Below the pieces are notes generated by a model that saw only the letters and a program-made list of their open reading frames with translations, ran no database searches and had not been told where the DNA came from. A stretch of DNA of 63,094 nt, counting the filler, from Sluysia triapertura (Eukaryota): the NCBI GenBank assembly GCA_046118255.1. It is 5 parts of 5 records of this genome, joined end to end, with 100 filler letters (N's around TTAATTAATTAA, not from the genome) between each part and the next. Parts side by side here need not be neighbours in the genome. Positions count along the whole stretch, not along the records: positions 10,895 to 21,799 come from JBJNIA010191729.1; 4 more parts are not named here. The stretch is one strand, 5' to 3'. The translations under genes were made by a program, and so were the position numbers. Below, piece after piece: positions 20,300-21,542 of the stretch. How positions within the stretch are numbered: the stretch's first letter is position 1; each line of letters begins with the position of its first letter.

Positions 20300-21542
20300 A
20301 TGGATAAAATAATTAAAACAATAGGATCATTTAATCCATTAGATTCCAAATATCCACGAGATTGGCCAGAAAGATTTAGTATATGGACTGTTGCGTTTTT
20401 GATTGCAGTAGGGTTGATATTAACTCAAAAAACATATTTTGCTTATTCATTAGATTGTGTAATTAATAATGCAGCTAAAGTGAAAGGATTTGAGAATTAT
20501 GTACATGCTTATGTATGGAATTATGGATCAATTCCAAAAGAAAAGTATTTAAACAATCTACCCAATACTGATGAGCAATGGGAAGAAGTGTTTAAAAAAG
20601 ATGGTAAAAACTACTACTATTACATGCCAATGGTTGTTTTACTATTTGCATTCCTTATGTATATACCGAAGTTTTTATGGAGCCACTTTTTATCTAATAC
20701 TCTTTATTTTGATGTTAAAGAAAAATTGTTCAATGATGTAAAGAAATTATCACAATTAGATGGTGATGAGTATAACAAAAGAGCAGGTTGATAATTATAT
20801 CATATATACTAAATTTTATTAATCTATTAAGTGATATTTATTGAATAATTATTATTTAATTTCAGTCGAAGTATTGCGCATTTTAAAACAATGTACTTTA
20901 AGAATTCAACCCAAAAATTCGATGAGAAATTGTTTCTTAAAAATGATTATGAATATTAGAGAAACAATTTTTTCAAGATCTGCTGGAAATATTTTATTCA
21001 GTCAATTTATTTTTGTGAAATTTCTAACAAATATTATTGTTATTAGTCAATTGGTAATACTTTTTGTAATAACTGGTGTTAGTCCGCTAAAAGTAATATA
21101 TGCTCTAAAAGGAGATTGGAGTCAAATTGAACATATTTATCCTACTCATTCATTTGCTTTTGTTAATGATATTAGAGTTTTAGGATCAAGAAATTCGTAT
21201 GTTGGTGAATGCATTTTAGCACATAATTTAATTTTGTCACGTTTTTCTGTGATATTGTATCTAATTTGCACCTTTGTGTTGATATCAAACTCAATCTCTT
21301 TGATGTACTGGTTTGTAACAATTTTAGGTAAATCAAACCGAAAAGAAATTAAAAATTACATAAGACTTCAATGTAATGAGGAAATTAAAAATAAATTCGT
21401 AGAACATTTGACAACAGATTACATATTTCTTATAAAATTAATGCGTGAATTTAGCAATAAAATGACAGTCGATGAAGTCGTTAATGTACATATTGAACAA
21501 TTTTATACGAATGTGCAAACACTGCAAATGTGCAAGGAGTAA
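20300..21542 (+). CDS. Innexin (gap-junction protein), two exons 20300-20786 and 20866-21542, 387 aa
   Basis: Phase-1 intron GTTGAT..TTTCAG (79 nt). Four hydrophobic segments and innexin motifs: D..ERF..WT, Y...Y(V)W, YYYYMP..L..FLMYIPKFLW, YP..IRVLG..ECIL..N and LTTDYIFLIKLM. Confidence 0.92.

Follow-up and report, generated by a model that had tools for sequence, protein, structure and literature searches.

Each extracellular loop of an innexin carries two conserved cysteines (PMC5412853), and reviews and structures of innexins and pannexins treat these four residues as defining and required. In the structure of Caenorhabditis elegans INX-6 they form the disulfides C58-C265 and C76-C248 (PMC5146279), and in that of Panx1 the disulfides C66-C267 and C84-C248 (PMC7108861). 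All four loop cysteines of Panx1 have been reported as required (PMC3928549), and in Drosophila Zpg cysteine-to-serine changes, even single ones, gave null phenotypes, and the protein was no longer localised to the membrane (PMC9578636). Since these mutants lose function, a working channel with one disulfide is not guaranteed. A large innexin survey noted more than two cysteines per loop in some proteins and noted none with fewer (PMC8769644). Our motif search of the supplements of this 1,521-innexin survey returned no match, and we found no earlier description of one-disulfide innexins within the literature searched.

Here we describe an innexin gene in the window, the whole stretch of DNA that was analysed (63,094 nucleotides from Sluysia triapertura, assembly GCA_046118255.1). 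Judged from sequence comparison, it probably encodes a functional, fast-evolving innexin that belongs to a lineage-restricted subfamily in which the disulfide of the C76-C248 type was lost as a pair, so that the subfamily departs from the four-cysteine scheme.

Gene model of the window innexin

The window innexin is a two-exon gene on the + strand encoding 387 amino acids, with its ATG at 20300 and its TAA at 21540-21542, and two adjacent + strand ORFs (20300-20791 and 20841-21542) contain the two exons. From the ORFs and their translation, exon 1 (20300-20786; 162 codons plus 1 nt) runs from the N-terminus through TM1, loop 1 and TM2 into the cytoplasmic loop, and exon 2 (20866-21542; 2 nt, 224 codons and a stop codon) supplies what remains of that loop, followed by TM3, loop 2, TM4 and the C-terminal domain. 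Between them the DNA sequence reads as a phase 1 GT..AG intron of 79 nt (20787-20865, + strand), and reading through it leads to an immediate in-frame stop. The junction codon g|tc, split between the g at 20786 that ends exon 1 and the t at 20866 that begins exon 2, specifies Val163. In the best full-length database match, the 388-aa protein P0002, the region of the junction aligns (KRAVEVL against QKCVEQI) and the junction Val is matched. Because the N-terminus, junction and C-terminus align end to end with P0002, the gene model looks complete.

Both exons match the Pfam Innexin family (PF00876) above its cut-off of 25 bits, exon 1 with 51.2 bits (profile positions 10-128) and exon 2 with 48.5 bits (142-328), together spanning profile positions 10-328 of 333. 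Hydropathy marks four hydrophobic segments, two in exon 1 (residues 23-48 and 107-131) and two in exon 2 (exon-2 residues 40-82 and 115-154), which coincide with the aligned TM1-TM4 of relatives. In all searches, alignments and trees the exons were taken separately (20300-20785 and 20868-21539).

Loop cysteines

Pairwise HMMER alignment with INX-6 (5h1q) places C53 on C58, V72 on C76, A260 on C248 and C278 on C265, and sets YYYY against YYQW; the cysteine columns recur in two MAFFT alignments that include about 30 relatives. Loop 1 keeps its first cysteine, Cys53 (20456-20458, + strand here and for the residues that follow), in a column that is invariant in the 31-row alignment, and has Val72 (20513-20515) at the site of its second, giving YVW where the family has YCW. 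Loop 2 has Ala260 (21156-21158) at the site of its first cysteine, with YPTHSFA in place of FPRVxxC, and keeps its second, Cys278 (21210-21212, in the motif ECIL), the partner of Cys53. At the start of TM2, residues 105-108 (20612-20623) are YYYY by translation and alignment instead of YYQW; the motif as a whole is YYYYMP, in which both tyrosines and the proline are kept and the Q and W have both become Tyr. Pro110 and Pro123 are retained.

Given the INX-6 and Panx1 pairings, Val72 and Ala260 replace disulfide partners, and since each loop holds one cysteine only between its flanking TM segments, a shifted cysteine cannot substitute. Set against the four loop cysteines expected of the family, the protein has one per loop; its homology is unambiguous, so the missing pair is a deviation within innexins and not grounds for exclusion from them. 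An earlier note on this DNA had proposed, from the sequence alone, an innexin lacking both cysteines of one extracellular disulfide. The Pfam matches bear out the family assignment, its coordinates and the 387-aa length agree with the gene model, and the alignments recover the kept C53, YVW, YPTHSFA, ECIL and YYYY as it had read them. That the two missing residues are partners agrees with both structures, and the alignments place no other cysteine at either lost site.

INX-6 (PDB 5H1Q/5H1R) is the only significant solved relative of the window protein. The two share the Pfam family, four-TM topology, the equivalent of C58-C265, the TM2 proline and probably the loop architecture of E1 helix and E2 beta-hairpin. 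They differ in the C76-C248 disulfide, replaced by Val and Ala, and in YYQW, replaced by YYYY, at an overall identity of about 20%.

The loss would be spurious if the cysteines were hidden by misassembly, an incorrect gene model or faulty alignment, which we regard as highly improbable. A search of public sequencing runs found the stretch in one DNA-type run and in zero RNA-type runs, and the single run may be the source sample, so that its contig gives weak independent support. Even so, this Logan contig covers 19988-21765 without an indel and with no listed mismatch in the coding sequence, which answers the earlier note's concern about assembly error as far as a contig possibly from the source sample can, and the DNA contig of that run (X1) includes the intron. 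Further against an artefact, each loop has its single cysteine between the flanking TM segments, three independent alignments agree, and the same state recurs in five unrelated database entries.

Relatives and the shared one-disulfide state

A whole-library HMMER search with exon 1 returned 48 relatives and a word-index protein search with exon 2 returned zero matches; neither protein search contained a close orthologue. The named clusters among the HMMER relatives are nearly all Platyhelminthes (Schistosoma, Trichobilharzia, Paragonimus, Spirometra, Taenia, Echinococcus, Cichlidogyrus, Macrostomum and Schmidtea smedxin-11), which makes a flatworm origin of the window gene likely, and the sole non-flatworm named relative is a nematode match spanning 29 residues only. 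We also considered an origin from polydnavirus vinnexins and dropped it, as the nearest relatives are flatworm innexins, the DNA is ordinary and AT-rich, and an intron is present.

The nearest named relatives by HMMER are canonical flatworm innexins (the Schistosoma G4V7R2 cluster, Paragonimus, Macrostomum and Schmidtea smedxin-11). They share loop frameworks with the window protein (K.Y...C, W.xG, FP and the N at the start of TM4) but keep all four loop cysteines and YYQW and are 430-500 aa long. At 382-409 aa the one-disulfide proteins are shorter, and they are the most derived of the set.

Relatives were gathered by onward searches with P0002 and with a profile, and all matches were inspected. 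The same cysteine pair is absent, and the other pair kept, in five other innexins: P0002, P0066, P0025, P0041 and P0081. P0002, which is 33% identical to the window protein across residues 1-150, has YIW for YCW and FPIDTYG for FPRVxxC and keeps the other two cysteines. At the second cysteine site of loop 1 and the first of loop 2, respectively, the window protein has V and A, P0002 (with the near-identical P0049) I and G, P0066 T and G, P0025 I and G, and P0041 and P0081 both G and A. All six one-disulfide proteins retain the first cysteine of loop 1 and the second of loop 2, with a single cysteine per loop, and in BLASTP one-disulfide proteins are the best matches of both window exons. Some 25 related full-length innexins have all four loop cysteines (24 in the second alignment), and every one of these that can be named is from a flatworm. 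Among the full-length relatives aligned, no protein is changed at one of the two sites alone. P0019 also lacks a loop cysteine; it is an aberrant model whose loop-2 region is unalignable, and it was left out of the trees and the second alignment.

The presence of the paired loss in five other proteins indicates a trait that has been maintained in a lineage, and is neither an error nor an isolated case. The earlier note had treated the gene as a single odd case, and in this respect the picture changes, as the gene belongs to a subfamily. Its suggestion that the one-disulfide state is tolerated or selected gains strength from the five proteins, which fall into two subgroups and include two orthologue pairs.

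These pairs, P0002/P0066 and P0041/P0081, each share about 57% identity. In both, the loops are conserved above the protein average, with 59-69% identity, while the cytoplasmic loop and the tail reach about 50%; this points to constraint on the extracellular domain of one-disulfide proteins. The one-disulfide relatives come from environmental assemblies and a helminth-era UniParc set. P0002 and P0081 are from the same ENA assembly, so that at least two one-disulfide paralogues probably coexist in one source, and the UniParc numbers of P0066, P0025 and P0041 fall in the narrow range of a Taenia solium WormBase-ParaSite entry. The shared assembly and the number range together suggest two species, each carrying both of the subgroups, termed A and B below.

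The metagenome locus scan found only ordinary four-cysteine innexins at L003-L005. At L001 and L006 (ENA ERZ27257134) and L002 (SRR5195110), P0002 and P0081 are uninterrupted ORFs on AT-rich contigs slightly longer than the coding sequence, which suggests that these contigs are transcript-derived or that the genes are intron-less, unlike the intron-bearing window gene. L001 and L002 are the same gene in two samples, with 3 synonymous and 2 non-synonymous codon differences.

Of the six one-disulfide proteins, four have a Glu just before the retained loop-2 cysteine (ECxL); canonical flatworm innexins carry Gln there (AQCxLP). The motif G(S/T)IPK after the loop-1 site is common to group A, and both features may be compensatory changes. 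In two other gene models the segment from TM1 to loop 1 is present in tandem, in four copies in P0001 (Paragonimus kellicotti KAF6772073.1) and in two in P0006. This looks like tandem alternative exons of a trematode innexin, probably mutually exclusive, that were read through by the gene predictor.

Descent of the one-disulfide innexins

All trees, of the N-terminal half, of the C-terminal half and of full-length proteins, were built with the two cysteine columns removed. The N-terminal half joins the window protein with P0002 and P0066 (support 95/90), with P0025 adjacent and the long-branch, four-cysteine P0042 intruding, and the C-terminal half joins it with P0025, P0002 and P0066 (90/96). 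A full-length tree, made by a quick method from the relatives only, resolves group A as (P0025,(P0002,P0066)) with an SH-aLRT of 93 and group B as (P0041,P0081) with a support of 100; both lie on one side of a branch with a weak support of 39. From these groupings, the cysteine pair was lost once or at most twice. The window protein shares with P0002, P0066 and P0025 the paired loss, the retention of the other pair and common descent, and the one-disulfide innexins are probably a subfamily restricted to one lineage, the flatworms.

Parts of these trees could also reflect attraction among the long branches of fast-evolving innexins, in which case the pair was lost independently in the window lineage and the likeness to the other one-disulfide proteins is misleading. 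The long branches of window exon 2 and P0025 meet in the C-terminal tree, P0042 joins the window protein in the N-terminal tree despite its four cysteines, and the union of groups A and B is the weakly supported one. This account nevertheless has to explain why both halves separately group with P0002 and P0066 once the cysteine columns are gone, why loop motifs other than the cysteines are shared (G(S/T)IPK in loop 1, xDxRxLGS and Y..EC in loop 2), and why one-disulfide proteins lead the BLASTP results for both exons. We therefore rate independent loss as quite unlikely, and common descent of the paired loss remains the preferred reading.

Constraint on the window gene

A stop-free frame of 387 codons has a chance probability of about 1e-15 at this base composition. 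All 20,000 shuffled versions of exon 2 contained a stop, and stop-free runs average 11 codons across the 9.4 kb around the gene. The G+C fraction at codon positions 1, 2 and 3 of the gene is 0.33-0.37, 0.27 and about 0.21. At columns conserved in at least 90% of relatives, the window protein keeps 15 of 20 residues; of its five departures, four are conservative (D to E, W to Y, Y to F, F to Y). At columns conserved in at least 80% it keeps 22 of 36, the lowest count of the set. Its losses include YYQW, the NEK that follows loop 2 and, in the C-terminal domain, the DG and LW motifs. It is the most derived sequence of the set, and its C-terminal half has a very long branch (2.9). The gene is thus highly derived, yet it does not look neutral.

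The same divergence could mark a decaying or functionless paralogue, a member of the subfamily by descent that evolves under relaxed constraint and has not yet acquired a stop. The low retention of family-conserved residues, the long C-terminal branch, the missing signature motifs, the absence of the stretch from RNA runs and the lack of a close orthologue in two large protein searches would all fit such decay. Against it, an open frame of this length would break fast at 75-78% A+T, and neutral change of the amount on this branch would have brought stops many times over. The GT-AG intron, the start and end that align with relatives, and the four TM segments are intact, and C53, W73, P110, P123, W127, K214, P255, C278, N283, W311 and D347 are all retained. 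Decay accordingly appears improbable. A functional, fast-evolving gene fits better. The earlier note's view of an otherwise intact gene is supported, since frame, splice sites, four hydrophobic segments and most of the strongly conserved residues are in place.

Predicted structure and channel function

An AlphaFold2 model of P0002, computed from the 31-row alignment, has a pLDDT of 86.8 and a pTM of 0.83, and an INX-6-like fold is confidently predicted for this close subfamily member. The best PDB matches of the model are INX-6 chains (TM 0.66-0.72), followed by pannexins and LRRC8. In the model, Ile72 lies on the E1 helix, and Gly260 and Cys278 lie on the E2 beta-hairpin.

Under the preferred reading of a functional subfamily member, the pair equivalent to INX-6 C76-C248 would have been given up together, selection against an unpaired cysteine having led to the loss of both partners. 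The replacements are small or beta-branched aliphatic residues (V, I, T or G in loop 1 and A or G in loop 2), and their side chains may pack at the former disulfide site. The C58-C265-type disulfide would still staple loop 1 to the loop-2 beta-hairpin, and the protomer would still assemble into a large-pore channel.

Vertebrate pannexin-1 is a homologous large-pore channel with the pairing C1-C4 and C2-C3, and it sets the precedent for undocked function in the innexin family. In pannexins both disulfides are present, and N-glycosylation of the loops blocks docking. The window protein, by contrast, has lost one disulfide and has no N-x-S/T sequon in loop 1 or loop 2, and we dropped glycosylation-blocked docking as a candidate explanation on the latter ground. 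The earlier note proposed altered docking, perhaps a hemichannel. Whether the predicted channel would form docked gap junctions or undocked hemichannels is evenly balanced, since the above-average loop conservation of the subfamily fits docking and roles in the pore or gating alike.

A broader proposal, possible but rather doubtful, is that one-disulfide innexins form a natural channel class with changed extracellular mechanics, acting as obligate undocked hemichannels or as subunits with private docking, of which the window gene would be an extreme, specialised member. As hemichannels, they would reach a pannexin-like function through a loosened loop scaffold instead of glycosylation; as privately docking subunits, they would prevent coupling between certain cell types.

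In Drosophila Zpg (Inx4) and Panx1, the engineered cysteine mutants lack the same class of residue as is missing here. They are cysteine-to-serine changes, single or multiple, whereas in the window subfamily both partners have become non-polar and the change persists across divergent proteins. A natural, long-maintained loss of one structurally defined pair is in this sense a ready-made double-mutant experiment, and the paired loss confirms C2-C3 pairing by covariation. One-disulfide innexins would show that the fold can persist with one staple, and their sequences provide material on the role of the second disulfide in folding, trafficking, docking and gating. They also flag a probably flatworm-restricted group of innexins amenable to expression and RNAi work in planarians.

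Genomic surroundings

The piece that carries the gene (10895-21799) has 20-34% G+C. A tblastn search of the remainder of the piece with the two exons found no nearby paralogue, an Rfam scan of the piece returned nothing, and the roughly 7 kb upstream of the gene (13000-20300; 20-25% G+C) lack any ORF that matches a family. Besides the innexin gene, the piece has one clear coding signal, an ArfGap domain exon within a 228-codon ORF on the + strand (11189-11872), which matches Pfam PF01412 with 42.3 bits over profile positions 29-109 of 117. The first part of the zinc finger must be encoded by an exon further upstream. A 104-aa ORF on the - strand (12341-12655), in the slightly GC-richer region from 11.4 to 13.4 kb (31-34% G+C), has no Pfam match; it presumably resembles the C-terminal tail of retroelement ORFs. 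An (AAT)n microsatellite at 21778-21799 closes the piece.
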